Sequence record: NC_048016.1
Length of the DNA: 64,000 bases
Direction: 5' to 3' (one strand)
Part shown: one piece after another, positions 13,430 to 20,165 of the stretch
How positions within the stretch are numbered: position 1 is the first letter of the stretch
Layout: every line of letters starts with the position of its first letter
Translations under genes and position numbers: made by a program
The notes under the pieces: model-generated
What the model was told of the DNA's origin: nothing
The model's input: the letters and a program-made list of their open reading frames with translations, nothing else
Database searches by the model: none

Positions 13430-13463
13430 AATAAAAAGAAGAAAGGGTGCCCCGAAGGGCACC
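13430..13463 (-). terminator. rho-independent terminator ending the radical SAM operon
   Basis: On minus: GGTGCCC-TTCG-GGGCACC followed by a T-rich tract. Confidence 0.8.
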
Positions 13464-13467
13464 ACTG

Positions 13468-14109
13468 TTATTCTACCGACGGATTAAACTCCGCCGCGTC
13501 GAGTGAGGCGTAATCGCCCTGCTCCGCAAATGCACGGATACGGGTTTTGTACGCGGTCAACTGAACGTGCAGCTGTGCGTTACGTGCGACAATCAGAGAG
13601 TACAGCATCTCTGTGTCTTTCGCTTCCCACTCTTCCAGCGCTTGGTTATCGGCAGTCACCCAATACTCCGGCACGGTGTTCGTTTGCACGAAGCCGGCCA
13701 GGGTGGTCAGGGTCTCACCTGCGGTCTGGAACATGTGGTCTTTGTACGCAATGTCAGCCGTGACCGCTTCACCGTACGCTGCATTAGTGGCCTGAAGTTT
13801 CTTGGCCAGCAGAGTATAGCAATACGCTTTGGTCGACTGCAACTCTTTGAGGTAATCCTTCACCTGAATCCCCAACACGTCTTTGATAAACGTTTTGGTT
13901 TGGCGTAGGGTGTAGTTGGCTTCGAACTGGGTCTGCCCCTGCTCTTGCAACTGACGCAGTGCATCTTTCTCACTGAGTCCCTCTAAGAGTGCGTAGTGTA
14001 AACGCTTGGCCAGCGTGACATCGCCGTTGGGGTCAAAGAACAACCCGTTGCGGTCAATCTGGCCATCGCCGTTTTCAAACCGCGCTTTTATCTCGTCAGC
14101 ACTAAGCAT
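13468..14109 (-). CDS. DUF4376-like protein (tail-fibre associated)
   Basis: 213 aa; C-terminal HMFQT...YWVTADNQ...LY..IV.R...L...K.RI pattern resembles DUF4376. Confidence 0.6.
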   Translation of the reverse strand: MLSADEIKARFENGDGQIDRNGLFFDPNGDVTLAKRLHYALLEGLSEKDALRQLQEQGQTQFEANYTLRQTKTFIKDVLGIQVKDYLKELQSTKAYCYTLLAKKLQATNAAYGEAVTADIAYKDHMFQTAGETLTTLAGFVQTNTVPEYWVTADNQALEEWEAKDTEMLYSLIVARNAQLHVQLTAYKTRIRAFAEQGDYASLDAAEFNPSVE

Positions 14110-14636
14110 TCTTTCTCTCCCACGAATCCAACTTTGGTCAACATGTCATAGGACATGATTTCAAAGTCGATACGAAGATCCAGACGGTACTGCAAGTTCG
14201 GCAACGGCTGGTCATTTTCTTGGAACGCCTGCATGAACATCATGTCATCGAAGTAATGACACGCGCTCTCGGGGTTGCGCACCATCCAGACCGGGACATC
14301 CGGGAAGGACAGACACAGTGCCACCAGAGAATCACCGCCACGATCGATAGTGCCGGTACGCAGGATGTTTACCTTTGAAGCAGGGGCCGCCAGAATACGC
14401 GCTTCGAAACCCGGGTTACGCTTTTCGATTTCTGCTAACGAGTCGTGGCCGTTCTCCACGCACTGAATCGGCAGGACAACGTTAAGAGCAAAACGGTTAA
14501 TCAAACGCAGCCAGTGATCGTTGAAATCATCGGCAGGCACGATAGCGTGAATGTTAAACAGCTTATAATGCTGTAAGAACGCTTCGATTTTGCGACTATC
14601 GTACTTCGTAAAATTCTGGAGAAGCAGGCTTTTCAT
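14088..14636 (-). CDS. hypothetical protein in the radical SAM cassette
   Basis: 182 aa; overlaps both neighbours (41 and 22 nt). Confidence 0.6.
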   Translation of the reverse strand: MKSLLLQNFTKYDSRKIEAFLQHYKLFNIHAIVPADDFNDHWLRLINRFALNVVLPIQCVENGHDSLAEIEKRNPGFEARILAAPASKVNILRTGTIDRGGDSLVALCLSFPDVPVWMVRNPESACHYFDDMMFMQAFQENDQPLPNLQYRLDLRIDFEIMSYDMLTKVGFVGEKECLVLTR

Positions 14637-15993
14637 TCTTGAATTGTTCCTTGCGGTCAGTTTGTTCCACAGCCATGGTCATCTCACGGATGGCGGTGAC
14701 GTGTAAAGGCTGTTCTGCAGCTTCGCGGGTGAGTTTCTCTTCAACAGCAAAGTTGCGCTTCTGTTGGCACTGGTAACAGTTACAAACAGACTTGTCGTAC
14801 TGCGATTCGTACGACCCGAAACGTTGTTTCCACCACTGCGCCACTAAGAGCTTCGCGGTAGTCCAACCACACTGGCGACGTTCGCCGTGATACTCTTTAC
14901 GAGCGTCTTCTTCACCGTCGCCATTTTCATACGCCGCCGCCACGCACGAGGCACACAGGTGCTTCGCTGGGCAACCGATACACTGGTCAGGATACGACTT
15001 CCACTGTTCCTGAACTTCGGCCAGCAGTTTACCGCCGTCGGTGTTCACGATGGTTTGACCTTCGAGCTTACCGATGGCCTGACGGGTGGTTACCGTGGAC
15101 ATGAAGCGGTTACAACCGAAGATGTTACGGTCGAAGCCGAGACAAGTCATGTACACCGTGGTGCCGCAGTGCGGACGCAGACGTTGTGGGTCGTAGCGTA
15201 CAGAGTCATCATGGATGAGCTTCTCACGCCAGTCCGGGTTCCACAGTTGGTCAACATCCAGACCGTCCGGCAGCACGTGACCGATTTCAGAGTTCTGGTC
15301 TAAGTGCAGACCTTTCTCAATGAAATACTCCGCCACTTCGATGAACTGGTTGGCAATCTCGAGTGCCATCTGGCGCGGTAACACGTCTTCGAAAACGACG
15401 TTACCGTACAGACGACCGCCCCCGGTCACATCAATCAGCGACTTCATCCCAGCACCGTACTGCATCAGCGTTTCTTTCGTGAAGGTGGCTTTCACCCCAA
15501 TCTCACGAACACCGATTTCTTGCAGAAGCTTATAGCCGGCGACCGCTGCTTGGTAAGACCCTTGACGGGACGTGGTGAAGATACGGTACTTATCGTGGGT
15601 CTCGGGCAGACCATCGATAGAGACACCGATCGACAGGTAATCTTTCCAGCGATTCAGAATCTCCAGCGCCAGCGGTTTGTCAAACAACGTGCCGTTGGTG
15701 GAGATAGAGAACACGTAAGGCAGATTGTGCTTTTTGCACAGCTCTTCTGCGGTTTCGAAGGCCGCTTTCAGCAGCTTCGGCTGCATGAAGGGTTCGCCAC
15801 CGATGATATCGATGATGATACCGTCGATACCTTGGTTCTTCGAGAAGAAGCGATGTTTATCGCGATTAAAGCAGGCGTGAATAAAATCAACGACATCAGC
15901 GACTTTGTTATTACGCGGATACTTACGCTCGTAGCAATACTCACAGTCGAGGTTGCACGATAGGTTGGTGACTATCTGGTAGGTTGCATCCAT
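14596..15993 (-). CDS. radical SAM/SPASM-domain enzyme, probable CXXX-repeat peptide maturase
   Basis: 465 aa; CNLDCEYC (CxxxCxxC), IIGGEPF and STNG motifs; C-terminal Cys-rich SPASM-like region HCG...C...GCNRF...CIGCPAKHLCASC...CGW. Confidence 0.9.
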   Translation of the reverse strand: MDATYQIVTNLSCNLDCEYCYERKYPRNNKVADVVDFIHACFNRDKHRFFSKNQGIDGIIIDIIGGEPFMQPKLLKAAFETAEELCKKHNLPYVFSISTNGTLFDKPLALEILNRWKDYLSIGVSIDGLPETHDKYRIFTTSRQGSYQAAVAGYKLLQEIGVREIGVKATFTKETLMQYGAGMKSLIDVTGGGRLYGNVVFEDVLPRQMALEIANQFIEVAEYFIEKGLHLDQNSEIGHVLPDGLDVDQLWNPDWREKLIHDDSVRYDPQRLRPHCGTTVYMTCLGFDRNIFGCNRFMSTVTTRQAIGKLEGQTIVNTDGGKLLAEVQEQWKSYPDQCIGCPAKHLCASCVAAAYENGDGEEDARKEYHGERRQCGWTTAKLLVAQWWKQRFGSYESQYDKSVCNCYQCQQKRNFAVEEKLTREAAEQPLHVTAIREMTMAVEQTDRKEQFKNEKPASPEFYEVR

Positions 15994-16005: not shown

Positions 16006-16890
16006 TTATTTTTTAATTGGATTAAGCCAGTTCATGATGTAACGGTAGCCGTGCTCACCGATGGCCAGTGCAATCTTGTTGCAGCCACGGTCCACGACCA
16101 TCTCAACGTTCTCAGGAACTTGCAGGTCGCCATTCGGTTGACTGACGATAATTTCACTACAGGCATTACACGCATCTTCTTCGAAGAACTTCTCGAGCTT
16201 GATGATGGTGTCACGCTTGTTAATGCGGTTGAGCTTACGCATGTTGTCTTGCAGACGCTCAAAGCCGTACACGAAGTTTAACACGTGGTCAGGCGACAGC
16301 ACTTTCTTCATCTGGTTATCGAACAGGTAGTTCATGCCGAGGAAACCAAGATGGTGAATGGCGTCTTGCATTTTCATCATGCCTTCGTGCCAGCGCATGT
16401 CCCCGATCTTCTCACGGGTTAACACTGACCAGAGGATAACGTTGTCCAGCTGGGCGATGACTTCAAACGCTTCGGTATCACCGGAACGAGCAAAGTCCAT
16501 TAAACCACGGGCATCATCTTCGTAACCGTCGATGGAGACCACAACACGATGGAAGGTTTTCAAAAACTCGACTTGCTCTAAACGTAACTTACGTCCGTTT
16601 GTGAAAAGATAGTGCACGGCAGAAGGACGTTCTACGCGCATCATCTCGACCGACTCGACGAGTTTACGGTAAGACAGTAACGGCTCACCCCCCGTCCAGA
16701 TGATCTCTTCCACACCGGGATTCTTTTTCAGTAACTCCATCATTGCCTCTTCATGGGTTTTACGAGACACGTCCCCTTTGACCATGTGAATCTCACCCGC
16801 ACAAAACGAACAATTGAGGTTACACTTCGACGTCAATGCTACGTTAATGGTCTTTGCAGGTGAGTAAACATCTTTACTTAACGTTCTCAT
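16006..16890 (-). CDS. second radical SAM protein (short C-terminus)
   Basis: 294 aa; CNLNCSFC, WTGGEPLL, FTNG, VVSIDG; only a short CNAC...GC tail. Confidence 0.85.
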   Translation of the reverse strand: MRTLSKDVYSPAKTINVALTSKCNLNCSFCAGEIHMVKGDVSRKTHEEAMMELLKKNPGVEEIIWTGGEPLLSYRKLVESVEMMRVERPSAVHYLFTNGRKLRLEQVEFLKTFHRVVVSIDGYEDDARGLMDFARSGDTEAFEVIAQLDNVILWSVLTREKIGDMRWHEGMMKMQDAIHHLGFLGMNYLFDNQMKKVLSPDHVLNFVYGFERLQDNMRKLNRINKRDTIIKLEKFFEEDACNACSEIIVSQPNGDLQVPENVEMVVDRGCNKIALAIGEHGYRYIMNWLNPIKK

Positions 16891-17800
16891 CCGTCATTCC
16901 GTACAGGCGACGTTGGAAAGAGAACAGTGGGTCGGTGTCTCGTACATCTTCACCCGCCTTTAACAGACGTGGTGAGCGATACGCATCGTACAGTGCGTTA
17001 AGAACGGATTGACGCTCACCCATGCGGATAAGGTCGTCCAGTTCAACCGGGGACGAAATAAACGGTTCCAGCGCAGCCTGTTGTTCGTCGGTGAACTCTT
17101 TCAGCTGTGACTGGAGCAGGAAGCGAATCAGTTTGCGATCATCCGCCGTGGAGTTCGGGACAGCGCCAAACTCAGTCTGACAGAGATAGGCCATCCACGG
17201 TTTACGGATGCGGAGTGTTTGCGCATGCGGGTCTGCGATGTAGACCCACTCTTGCTTCTCTGCATCCCATGCAAACTTATAACTAAACGCGAGTAAGTCT
17301 GCCAAGCAGTCGATATTCGCGGCTTCAAGGCCAGAGAACGGGTGATACATTTCACGGTCTTTCTCCACGCTTCCAGTGCCGGCTTCCACCAGTTTGAATA
17401 AGTGGGACCAGCTTCCGCAGTAATCGCTGCTGTAGCTACGCACGCACACCGGACGCATGCCGAGTTCTTTAAAGGACTCGAACATCAGTTCCAGTGGTGC
17501 ACTATAGTTCAGTACCGAATCTGTGAAAAAATACTTGTCGTTGACAAGCTTCCCGGTAAAACCAGAACCGCCTAAGGCGAACTGAATGGATTTCACGTTC
17601 AGCTTGCCCACCGTGGTCGCATCAATCACGGTGTACTCTTTTTTCGTAAAGTTGCGACCGCGAAGCTTAGGCCATTCAAACTGGTCCATGGCAATCAGCC
17701 GCAGCTCGTCGTTGATGTGTGCGTTAACACTGTCCGGTGACGAGATGTGAATTGGGTAATTCATGCTCGTGCGGTACGCAAGATGATCGTTACTCTTCAT
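16874..17800 (-). CDS. hypothetical protein in the radical SAM cassette
   Basis: 308 aa; RBS AGGGGA; 17-nt overlap with radical SAM 2; no family recognised. Confidence 0.7.
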   Translation of the reverse strand: MKSNDHLAYRTSMNYPIHISSPDSVNAHINDELRLIAMDQFEWPKLRGRNFTKKEYTVIDATTVGKLNVKSIQFALGGSGFTGKLVNDKYFFTDSVLNYSAPLELMFESFKELGMRPVCVRSYSSDYCGSWSHLFKLVEAGTGSVEKDREMYHPFSGLEAANIDCLADLLAFSYKFAWDAEKQEWVYIADPHAQTLRIRKPWMAYLCQTEFGAVPNSTADDRKLIRFLLQSQLKEFTDEQQAALEPFISSPVELDDLIRMGERQSVLNALYDAYRSPRLLKAGEDVRDTDPLFSFQRRLYGMTDENVK

Positions 17801-17812
17801 TAGGTTCCCCTG

Positions 17813-18022
17813 TTAACTCGGGAAGGAGACTGATTTCGCACCGCCTGAGCTACTCCAGCTACAGGTTCCGCCGCAGTTGTACGCGCCAGCACGAATCCCA
17901 CCCAAGTTGTTGGTGTTGTTACACGTTCCACGGTTGGCGATATAATCAACCGCCTGTCCCGTGGTAATATAGCGTTCGATGCTCGCCACGCGGTTACCGA
18001 TGTCTTTCAAGCTTACTGCCAT
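17813..18022 (-). CDS. short precursor-like peptide (leader plus truncated Cys core)
   Basis: 69 aa; MAVSLK leader and CGGTCSWS motif homologous to the two long peptides; RBS AGGAG. Confidence 0.75.
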   Translation of the reverse strand: MAVSLKDIGNRVASIERYITTGQAVDYIANRGTCNNTNNLGGIRAGAYNCGGTCSWSSSGGAKSVSFPS

Positions 18023-18031
18023 AGCCTACTC

Positions 18032-18460
18032 CTACGGTCCAGAACAGCCTGCTCCACAACTCCCGCCACAGCCACTACCGCAACTTCCCGAGCACCCGCC
18101 AGAACATTTGCCTGAACAGTTACCCGAGCATGTGCCAGAACAACCGCCGGAGCAGCCGCCGCCACAGTTACCGCCACAGCTGCCACTACAACCACCGGTG
18201 CAGCTAGATGAACAGTTGCCCGAACAGGATGACGAACACCCAGACGAGCAGTTACCCGTACAGCCACCAGAACAGCCGTTACCGCACGTCCAGCTACAAG
18301 AGCCGTTACAGTGCAGTGCCGCTGGGGTGAAACCGTTGAGTAAATCAGCATTATTAGTAGTGCGTCCACCGATGTAGTTTTGCACGCCTGCTTCAGTTTT
18401 TAGTGCGGTGTTCTCAATATTGACAACACGGTCACGCACCGATTTTAATGAAATCGCCAT
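18032..18460 (-). CDS. CXXX-repeat Cys/Ser/Gly-rich precursor peptide (23 perfect repeats)
   Basis: 142 aa = 50-aa leader + 23 x C-X-X-X; RBS AGGAG. Confidence 0.9.
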   Translation of the reverse strand: MAISLKSVRDRVVNIENTALKTEAGVQNYIGGRTTNNADLLNGFTPAALHCNGSCSWTCGNGCSGGCTGNCSSGCSSSCSGNCSSSCTGGCSGSCGGNCGGGCSGGCSGTCSGNCSGKCSGGCSGSCGSGCGGSCGAGCSGP

Positions 18461-18468
18461 TTCCGCTC

Positions 18469-18858
18469 CTAAGGGCTGCTACAACCAGCACTGCAGTTAC
18501 TGCTACAGGTGCCAGAGCAACCGCTAGAGCAGCTGCTGCCACATGAACCTGAACAGCCGCTTGAACAGCCACCAGAACACGAGGATGAGCAACCTCCCCC
18601 GCAACCACCAGAACACGAGCCCGAACAGTTACCTGTACACACGCCGCTACAGCTTCCTGAGCAGCTCGAGCAACCGTGACTACAACCTGACGAACACGTC
18701 CAACTGCACGACCCGTTACAACGGGCCCACGTATCAGGTTGGCCTGCCAATAGATTCGCATTGTGAACTTTGCTGTTCACCTGCCCCTCTACGGACGCGC
18801 CGGTTGCTGCTTGGACTCGGTCAAGACGGGCACTTAGTTCTTTAAGTGATATCGCCAT
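18469..18858 (-). CDS. CXXX-repeat Cys/Ser/Gly-rich precursor peptide (21 Cys)
   Basis: 129 aa = 46-aa leader + 20 x CXXX + one CXX; RBS AAGGGAAGG. Confidence 0.9.
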   Translation of the reverse strand: MAISLKELSARLDRVQAATGASVEGQVNSKVHNANLLAGQPDTWARCNGSCSWTCSSGCSHGCSSCSGSCSGVCTGNCSGSCSGGCGGGCSSSCSGGCSSGCSGSCGSSCSSGCSGTCSSNCSAGCSSP

Positions 18859-18921: not shown

Positions 18922-20121
18922 TTAACGTGAACCGGCATCAGCCTGTACATCGTCACGTGTGGTCAAGTTGGCGTTGACGTGCACGTTTGCCTGAACCACG
19001 CCGCCATACTGCTTGTGCAGGTACTGGGTGTGTGGATCGGCGGCAGACAGGTGGTTAGCGAGCGTCTGGTTAACACTGGCGATGTTGCCCTCGGTCGTGG
19101 TGACACGACGGGTCAGTGCGGTCAGGTCAACACGCAGCTGGTCAATCTGCTGCTGTGCGTCACCGGCTCCGGACTTGAGGTCATCAATCTGGTCTTGCAA
19201 CCCAACGGCCGTTTGCTTCAACTCATTCACGGTTTTCTGTAACGTCAATACCAGTGAATTGAGGTTGGCCACAATCAACGTCATCTTCTGGTAGTTTTGG
19301 TCTACCGTGTTCAGTTGGTCGTTGAAGGTGGTCAGCGAACTGACGATGGCATCAATGCGCCCACCCAGTGCCGTATCAGCAGCCTTAAGGTCGCCAATCT
19401 GGACGAGGGTTGCATCGATAGCTGCCTGCACGCCGGCAATCAACGCACGGATTTCGGTTGCGGTCAAACCATCAATATCGTGGATATCAAGGTTGTGCAC
19501 GTTACCCGTGGCATTGATGTGGGCATTCAGCGCGTCCAAGAAGTTATTCTTGATGTCGCCGATGATGTCTTTGATTTTCTCAAGCTGAACGGCATCGCCT
19601 GAACCAATCGCATCCAGAATACCCGAGAGCAGGGTAATGACGTATTCAAAACCAAAGATATCGCCAACGTCTTTAAACGCCGGGGCACCCGGTAGCGTAT
19701 CCGGGAAATCGATTAAGTCGGCAAAGTTCACCTTCTTATTATCAATGCCCAGAATCGCAATCGCATTTTCAATCGCAGTCACGTTCGCAGACATTGGCCC
19801 ACCGACAACCTGAGCGGTCACGATGATGTCTGTTGGAATGCTGCTGTTGGTCACTACAACTGCCATCACGACTTCTTTGTTGCCCGAGAGCTTCATGTAG
19901 GCCGGATGAGCGAAAATCAGTTCGTAGTCGGTACCACGTTTATACGGCGTGGTGGGCGAGTTCGTGGCACGCAGTTTAAAACTGTCTGCGTAAAACGGAC
20001 CTGCCGGAAAAGCAAAAGACCGGTTAACTTTACCGGAACCCAAGACCACGGGGATACTTACCGCGTTCGATGTCAGAGTTCCTTTAAGGTCAAGCGGATA
20101 CTGGAAAATAATATCACTCAT
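18922..20121 (-). CDS. coiled-coil tail-fibre-like virion protein
   Basis: About 399 aa from MSDIIF; N-terminal GPFY...DYELIF domain shared with the giant fibres; long heptad region; NHLSAADPHTQY fibre motif. Confidence 0.7.
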   Translation of the reverse strand: MSDIIFQYPLDLKGTLTSNAVSIPVVLGSGKVNRSFAFPAGPFYADSFKLRATNSPTTPYKRGTDYELIFAHPAYMKLSGNKEVVMAVVVTNSSIPTDIIVTAQVVGGPMSANVTAIENAIAILGIDNKKVNFADLIDFPDTLPGAPAFKDVGDIFGFEYVITLLSGILDAIGSGDAVQLEKIKDIIGDIKNNFLDALNAHINATGNVHNLDIHDIDGLTATEIRALIAGVQAAIDATLVQIGDLKAADTALGGRIDAIVSSLTTFNDQLNTVDQNYQKMTLIVANLNSLVLTLQKTVNELKQTAVGLQDQIDDLKSGAGDAQQQIDQLRVDLTALTRRVTTTEGNIASVNQTLANHLSAADPHTQYLHKQYGGVVQANVHVNANLTTRDDVQADAGSR

Positions 20122-20165
20122 CTCCAAGCTCCCTTACGAGAGGGCATCCCTGCCCTCACCAGTGG

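Follow-up and report, generated by a model that had tools for sequence, protein, structure and literature searches.

What is the function of the shortest of three related peptides that are encoded beside two radical SAM enzymes in the tail-fibre operon of Erwinia phage Wellington? The initial annotation called this 69-residue peptide a core-truncated precursor, and proposed that it might be a chain cap, a regulator or decoy, or a distinct product of the second radical SAM enzyme. We examined these proposals in a window of 64,000 nucleotides, which is the whole stretch of DNA that was analysed; it is 100% identical to the Wellington genome (NC_048016; 244,950 bp; genus Wellingtonvirus), and its base 1 is base 124001 of that record. 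The two long peptides are designated A and B, and the short peptide is designated C. Read along the minus strand, tail-fibre genes come first and are followed by a 401-aa protein, A, B, C, a phrog_8030 protein, a small radical SAM enzyme, a large radical SAM enzyme, a phrog_7988 protein and a phrog_8169 protein, with the following coordinates:

18922..20127, minus strand: 401-aa coiled-coil virion structural protein (phrog_2163) that immediately precedes the trio.
18469..18858, minus strand: long peptide A, 129 aa, 21-Cys ladder, RefSeq gp183 (TIGR04114, 23.7 bits; cut-off 20).
18032..18460, minus strand: long peptide B, 142 aa, 23-Cys ladder, RefSeq gp182 (TIGR04114, 24.4 bits; cut-off 20).
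17813..18022, minus strand: peptide C, 69 aa, RefSeq gp181 (hypothetical protein), class-C member of phrog_6085 (from the open reading frame, the annotation and a phrog_6085 match at E 6.9e-25).
16874..17800, minus strand: 308-aa protein (phrog_8030, E 3e-134).
16006..16890, minus strand: small radical SAM enzyme, 294 aa (PF04055, E 1e-14; phrog_1802).
14596..15993, minus strand: large radical SAM/SPASM-type enzyme, 465 aa (TIGR04115, 113.8 bits, cut-off 350; PapB, 107.7 bits, cut-off 340).
14088..14636, minus strand: 182-aa protein (phrog_7988, by phrog match), also present in the divergent loci tested (L032, L034).
13468..14109, minus strand: 213-aa protein (phrog_8169; DUF4376 in homologs), the last gene of the operon.
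13446..13463, minus strand: strong terminator-like hairpin that ends the operon.

No terminator-like sites were found between the fibre, peptide and enzyme genes of the Wellington operon, and the sequence suggests that these genes form one transcription unit. A cassette comprising the small radical SAM enzyme, the large SPASM-type enzyme, and the phrog_8030 and phrog_7988 proteins accompanies the trio inside the tail-fibre operon in SPN3US-like jumbo phages. The phrog_8030 protein is part of this gene set at every locus examined, including the divergent ones, and its gene directly follows that of the short peptide in most. Its AF2 model is confident (pLDDT 87, pTM 0.83); the fold had no match in the PDB (Foldseek E at least 0.05, TM about 0.1, with weak protein-kinase rows; VIA Z at most 4.4), and a protein Atlas search returned only leads below 0.9 and no family. 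Neither radical SAM enzyme comes near the curated cut-off of any named family, and the best family matches of the large enzyme, to the CXXX-repeat maturase and then to PapB, are likewise below cut-off. The cluster-binding motif of the small enzyme, which is of the type C-N-L-x-C-S-F-C and lies near the N-terminus at several loci, resembles the C-x3-C-S-[WF] of the peptides, and this resemblance may be a coincidence.

Peptide C begins with MAVSLKDIGNRV and ends with SSSGGAKSVSFPS. It contains three Cys residues, two of which belong to the motif shared with A and B and one of which is at residue 34. Its parts and its ribosome-binding site are as follows:

18029..18033, minus strand: Shine-Dalgarno sequence AGGAG, 6 nt 5' of the ATG of peptide C and overlapping the TAG stop codon of peptide B.
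17876..18022, minus strand: residues 1-49, the shared N-terminal module (from class alignments).
17852..17875, minus strand: residues 50-57, C-G-G-T-C-S-W-S, which are cysteine-ladder rungs 1-2 (from invariance within class C and across all classes).
17816..17851, minus strand: residues 58-69, the tail SSGGAKSVSFPS, which lacks Cys and ends in a lineage-specific [FYW]-P-S (from orthologue comparison).

The Shine-Dalgarno site, the selection acting on the reading frame and the membership in phrog_6085 establish that peptide C is a real gene under purifying selection. Across the whole open reading frame, dN/dS is 0.03-0.22 for every orthologue pair with unsaturated dS, and orthologues that start with GTG have equally good ribosome sites. 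The phrog_6085 profile aligns residues 1-67 of peptide C with profile positions 1-66 of 129. Within the module, two predicted helices (residues 5-16 and 21-31) carry hydrophobic residues with 3-4-3-4 spacing and are followed by a TNN-L-x-G segment. The pattern N-x3-L-x-G-x5-Y of the module may resemble a common tail-fibre motif. An AF2 monomer model has pLDDT values of 72-74 at residues 1-20 and low confidence past approximately residue 32; such a model, with two short helices and the rest at low confidence, is compatible with a leader and also with a subunit whose folding depends on binding. The tail at residues 58-69 is kept in the Wellington and CR5 groups, and is replaced by CSG.CS[HRK]GAG.. 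in the SPN3US, Machina and Erskine groups.

In most of the records examined, the trio genes are unannotated or wrongly framed. The annotated start of Wellington gp182 lies 21 nt too far downstream, and gp183 is annotated in the wrong frame (18432-18761 of the window). In pEa_SNUABM_11 (L002 7628-8454), B is unannotated and A is mis-framed. Peptides A and C are unannotated in SPN3US (L005 5175-6204), and the sole open reading frame annotated over B is out of frame; consequently, published proteomics that used the RefSeq annotation could not have detected the trio. In the SPN3US record NC_027402, C corresponds to roughly 143191-143397, and the other two frames lie upstream of it. The N-terminal modules have Lys and Arg residues and should therefore yield observable tryptic peptides. 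A study of the essential genes of SPN3US, for which genetics is well established, does not mention these genes (PMC5105663). The open reading frame at 17979-18377 on the plus strand, and others that overlap 18032-18858, have Pro/Gln/Glu-rich or Val/Ala-rich translations and are shadows of the GC-rich ladder DNA rather than genes.

The likeness among the three peptides reflects homology rather than chance, as judged from pairwise matches and from a common protein family. By BLASTP, peptide C is 40% identical to B over 63 aa (E 4e-11) and 33% identical to A over 57 aa (E 7e-7), and all three Wellington peptides match phrog_6085 with E values from 7e-25 to 5e-35 (A, 7e-28; B, 5e-35). When the 245-kb Wellington genome was searched with the module profile, exactly the three sites of the trio were recovered.

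The sequence features that were initially reported to unite the three peptides are borne out for Wellington. All three begin with MA[IV]SLK (MAVSLK in C, MAISLK in A and B), and each of them matches N-x3-L-x-G-x7-C-x-G-[ST]-C-S-W-[ST]. The first Cys of this motif is residue 47 in A, 51 in B and 50 in C, by a residue count and by script alike. Loss of the motif from orthologous short peptides had been put forward as the outcome that would speak against a recognition role. These peptides retain it, with C50, C54, S55 and W56 invariant among 26 class-C sequences.

A wider comparison narrows the description of the motif as exact and common to all. In an alignment of 37 sequences from all three classes, M1, G42, C50, G52, C54 and S55 are invariant, R11 and W56 are nearly invariant, and the motif is the best-conserved part of the peptide family. 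The Cys and Ser core is thus held without exception, but the N-x3 portion is not conserved, given that the Asn at L-4 is replaced by Thr in most orthologous short peptides, and the spacing between the two Cys residues is x2 rather than x3 in several relatives (e.g. CSGCSW, CNGCSW and CTGCSW). The proposed conservation of the Trp residue of CSW similarly stands for the three Wellington peptides and for all 26 class-C sequences, but not for some long siblings, because it is replaced by Phe in the B peptides of the SPN3US group and by Tyr in one divergent B. Any cross-link at this position would therefore have to tolerate any aromatic ring.

The motif is in register with the four-residue ladder, such that C50 and C54 form rungs 1 and 2, and an aromatic residue stands in the first C-S-x-x unit where later units have Gly. 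This register, as read from the sequences, would fit the earlier suggestion that the motif is a site of first modification. The number of rungs in class C is two in Wellington, CR5, L027, L032 and L034, four in the SPN3US, Machina and Erskine groups, and five in L037, and in each case a short Gly/Ser tail follows.

The description of peptide C as core-truncated implied decay, and this is contradicted by its distribution: class C is old, is conserved separately and invariably comes last of the three. The order long A, long B, short C is kept in 20 of 20 loci with SPN3US-type synteny, and C is always 68-69 aa there. These loci include those of Wellington, Kwan-like phages, pEa_SNUABM_11, CR5, Caitlin, SPN3US, phiEaH2, SPAsTU and pEa_SNUABM_29, together with 12 IMG/VR contigs. 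On divergent contigs with a different gene order (L027, L032/33, L034, L035 and L037), A, B and a short C likewise precede the same enzymes. By tblastn, 62 records of the phage collection contain the short peptide and 62 contain the large radical SAM enzyme, and the two sets have an identical breakdown by organism name.

The distribution of the family is restricted. A search of 1.84 billion representative proteins with the module plus motif profile gave just 26 matches, most of which are class-C peptides of 60-76 aa, and the radical SAM cassette was found in every genomic context examined of module-profile matches. In a tree of the shared region, one group (SH-aLRT 93) contains 25 of the 26 class-C sequences, and a single origin of class C is not rejected (p-AU 0.375). 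The fixed order of the trio and the clustering of class C indicate that the short form is an old, maintained class and not the result of a recent truncation. One candidate relative, the 1061-aa P0025, was rejected; it is a protein with repeats of a calcium-binding type that aligns only with profile positions 10-52 and lacks the Cys motif. The five module-profile matches in this bacterial protein (E 5e-9) are probably compositional or spurious.

Taken together, we lean, with moderate confidence, towards a reading in which peptide C is a functional minimal member of the fixed trio, is docked by its module, is cross-linked at C-x3-C-S-aromatic, and serves as an obligate, stoichiometric partner of A and B. 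The N-terminal module would be a common docking element that brings A, B and C to the same maturation machinery, and C-x3-C-S-aromatic would be the first unit that this machinery cross-links. The nearest families of the large enzyme make a thioether-type link, formed by this SPASM enzyme, the most likely chemistry, and peptide C would receive one or two such cross-links. It would then act beside the two ladder peptides as a required partner in fixed proportion, and not as a decayed copy of either. In our reading, the short peptide would thus be an obligate minimal substrate or partner of a common maturation machinery. That C is modified, which enzyme is responsible and what the product does are points that we infer from sequence. 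The mature trio may be released as a product or may be a stapled component of the virion.

Natural variants inform on the parts of this architecture. In P0011, from a 222-kb SPN3US-like contig, the class-C peptide is continued by a beta-rich domain of 140 residues, for which a word search returned no relative besides P0011 itself. P0022, which occurs on two independent contigs, is a class-C peptide with approximately 80 extra residues. These fusions show that a domain can be attached to the C-terminus of C. In P0032, a tail-fibre-like N-terminal domain (phrog_5073, E 3.6e-5) precedes the module, the motif and a ladder, which shows that the front module need not sit at the N-terminus of a protein. 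Since the module is internal in this larger, tail-fibre-like protein, it may not be a removable leader and may instead be an assembly element.

The locus that encodes P0032 (L030) comprises a small radical SAM enzyme, a phrog_8030-like protein, a large radical SAM enzyme (173.5 bits over the full length of TIGR04115) and a single ladder protein, without any short peptide. Hence, C is not universally required. Two SPN3US-like IMG/VR loci (L013 3542-4453 and L020 3543-4454) have a third radical SAM gene between A and B (303 aa; PF04055, E 2e-13) and still encode three peptides. The layout is similar on a contig with a different gene set (L021 3018-5686). There, two Cys-x2-Cys repeat peptides (80 and 69 aa) are encoded after a tail-fibre-like gene, and the genes for a PapB-like radical SAM/SPASM enzyme (208.6 bits, cut-off 340) and for lysis come next, in that order. 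The placing of Cys-rich peptides and a radical SAM enzyme next to tail-fibre genes may recur among phages.

A less probable, yet still plausible, explanation is structural co-assembly, wherein A, B and C make up a single three-chain fibre that is attached to the virion. The N-terminal amphipathic helices would form a three-chain bundle, and the first C-x3-C-S-W units would lie side by side and be stapled; A and B would continue as a paired ladder, C would end or, in some phages, bear a distal domain, and the module would never be removed. This explanation overlaps with the one we favour, in that C could still be a radical SAM substrate.

Several observations are as expected for such a fibre. 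Every lineage has exactly three paralogs, whose order is fixed, the trio follows a coiled-coil virion protein within the tail-fibre operon with no intervening terminator, P0032 joins a tail-fibre-like domain to the module and ladder, and P0011 and P0022 bear their extra domains at the C-terminal end of C. The 3-4-3-4 hydrophobic spacing of the helices also agrees with it, and the sole similarities in the PDB are to trimeric coiled coils, although none of these is significant (E 0.17-2; a PDB profile search with the module found nothing significant, with a best E of 0.17). Moreover, the ladder lengths of A and B change together (59/64, approximately 81/83 and 129/133 residues; r = 0.97), but two outlier lineages drive this correlation, which loses significance when they are left out (r = 0.40, p = 0.16). 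The immediate upstream neighbours of the trio on divergent contig L032 are small genes and not fibre genes, as judged from a partial gene list, which counts against a general link with fibres. The full proposal, in which A, B and C make a heterotrimeric, radical-SAM-stapled cysteine-ladder fibre on SPN3US-like virions and C either stops after the first rungs or bears a distal domain, is one that we put forward only tentatively and consider rather doubtful.

We consider it unlikely that peptide C is a trans-acting helper or regulator, which would bind the maturase through its module and activate, prime or throttle it, be it as a leader in trans, a decoy or a competitive regulator. Leader peptides that act in trans are known for other RiPP enzymes, C has a full module and almost no core, and its gene immediately precedes those of the enzymes in most loci. 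However, a pure docking peptide would need neither an invariant C-x3-C-S-W nor a C-terminal tail under selection, and the large C-terminal domain fusions that C tolerates are more typical of a product or a structural part.

Very unlikely, in our estimation, is the suggestion that C is the dedicated substrate of the small radical SAM enzyme, which would convert it to a separate product (for example, one with a Trp cyclophane or a C-C cross-link) while A and B go to the large SPASM enzyme. The W-[ST]-[SC] sequence has the form of the aromatic-X-X unit that is cross-linked by cyclophane-forming radical SAM enzymes, the aromatic residue after Cys-Ser is conserved, and two dissimilar enzymes are encoded with two types of peptide. 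Nevertheless, the C-S-aromatic unit is common to A and B and so does not single out C, and the cyclophane families give only 34-54 bits against cut-offs of 310-445. The pairing of enzymes with peptides also breaks down among the variants, because at the P0032 locus both radical SAM enzymes and a phrog_8030-like protein accompany just one ladder protein and the short peptide is missing, and the two loci with a third enzyme lack a fourth peptide. The earlier idea of a distinct product of the second enzyme is therefore disfavoured. Finally, that C is a non-functional, decayed duplicate of a long precursor or a chance open reading frame, as its much shorter length and lack of a repeat core might suggest, is exceedingly improbable and was rejected, given a length of 68-69 aa with a Shine-Dalgarno site in 20 of 20 SPN3US-type loci, the low dN/dS, the presence of C in 62 of 62 phage records with the large enzyme, and the separate, old lineage of class C.

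If the preferred reading of C as a minimal trio member is correct, then this peptide marks the smallest natural unit of the radical SAM system, with one docking module and one C-x3-C-S-W. With 69 residues and 3 Cys, it is far easier to study by mass spectrometry or NMR than ladders with 21-23 Cys, and its small size and few Cys residues make it a practical entry to the chemistry of the CXXX-repeat family. The co-occurrence with the maturase in 62 phage records and the position in a tail-fibre operon suggest that the system probably matters to phages, and some of the SPN3US-like phages that carry it are studied as biocontrol agents. Missing or misframed annotation caused the trio to be overlooked by proteomic and comparative studies. 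A heterotrimeric stapled fibre, if it exists, would represent the first structural element of a virion to be built by radical SAM cross-linking of the RiPP type. New here are the recognition of the short peptide as an ancient class that travels with the cassette, the limits within which its motif holds, its natural fusions, and the observations that disfavour C as a dedicated product of the second enzyme.

The nearest described kind of system is the CXXX-repeat radical SAM target system, which is defined bioinformatically (NCBIfam TIGR04114 for the repeat, TIGR04117 for paralogs and TIGR04115 for the maturase). In both cases, peptides with Cys at every fourth residue in tandem adjoin a radical SAM enzyme of the SPASM type; the scores of A and B exceed the TIGR04114 cut-off, and TIGR04115 is the best family match of the large phage enzyme. 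The phage system differs in that this maturase reaches only 113.8 bits against the TIGR04115 cut-off of 350, a second radical SAM enzyme and the phrog_8030 and phrog_7988 proteins are added, a fixed trio shares a conserved N-terminal module of approximately 50 aa, and the genes lie in a tail-fibre operon. It also has a short member with only 2-5 Cys residues. Peptide C matches no NCBIfam family at E 0.1 or below and falls short of TIGR04114 because it has no repeats. Our literature search found no experimental paper on the CXXX-repeat radical SAM target system, and no paper on the trio or cassette of SPN3US-like phages.

The ranthipeptides made by PapB from PapA (freyrasin) and the SCIFF/CteB system likewise pair a SPASM radical SAM enzyme with a peptide that has regularly spaced Cys residues. 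PapB is the second-best match of the large phage enzyme (107.7 bits; 49.2 bits for the small enzyme), with both values below the cut-off of 340. Ranthipeptide rings join Cys to Asp or Glu (Cys-X3-Asp), whereas neither residue occurs after residue 26 of peptide C or in the ladders of A and B, such that the partners in the phage core would be Ser, Thr or Gly. Unlike the ranthipeptide and SCIFF systems, the phage operon has no recognisable leader peptidase or exporter family, and three of its proteins are without a known family or fold. Among the features of a classical RiPP precursor, then, the conserved N-terminal module is present, a peptidase or transporter family is not found in the operon, and the module is internal in P0032.

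The triceptide systems (XyeB, YhhB and GrrM/OscB) resemble the phage locus in having a conserved aromatic residue (W, sometimes F or Y) with two small residues beside a SPASM enzyme. The W-S-S or W-T-C unit of the phage peptides has this aromatic-X-X form, and by analogy this arrangement would fit the idea of a Trp cross-link. The phage system departs from triceptides in that each peptide has one such aromatic residue, which lies within a Cys ladder, and the large enzyme scores only 50-54 bits (YhhB, 53.5 bits, cut-off 445; GrrM/OscB, 49.9 bits, cut-off 310).

A final comparison is with QhpC and QhpD of quinohemoprotein amine dehydrogenase. The sequences are unrelated, the similarity of the phage radical SAM enzyme to the QhpD family amounts to 66 bits, and QhpD is bacterial and acts on one substrate, whereas the phage has a trio. 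Nevertheless, in the QhpC/QhpD system, a radical SAM enzyme staples a small subunit that stays in a larger complex, and this provides a precedent for thioether cross-links outside secreted peptides, in a structural subunit.
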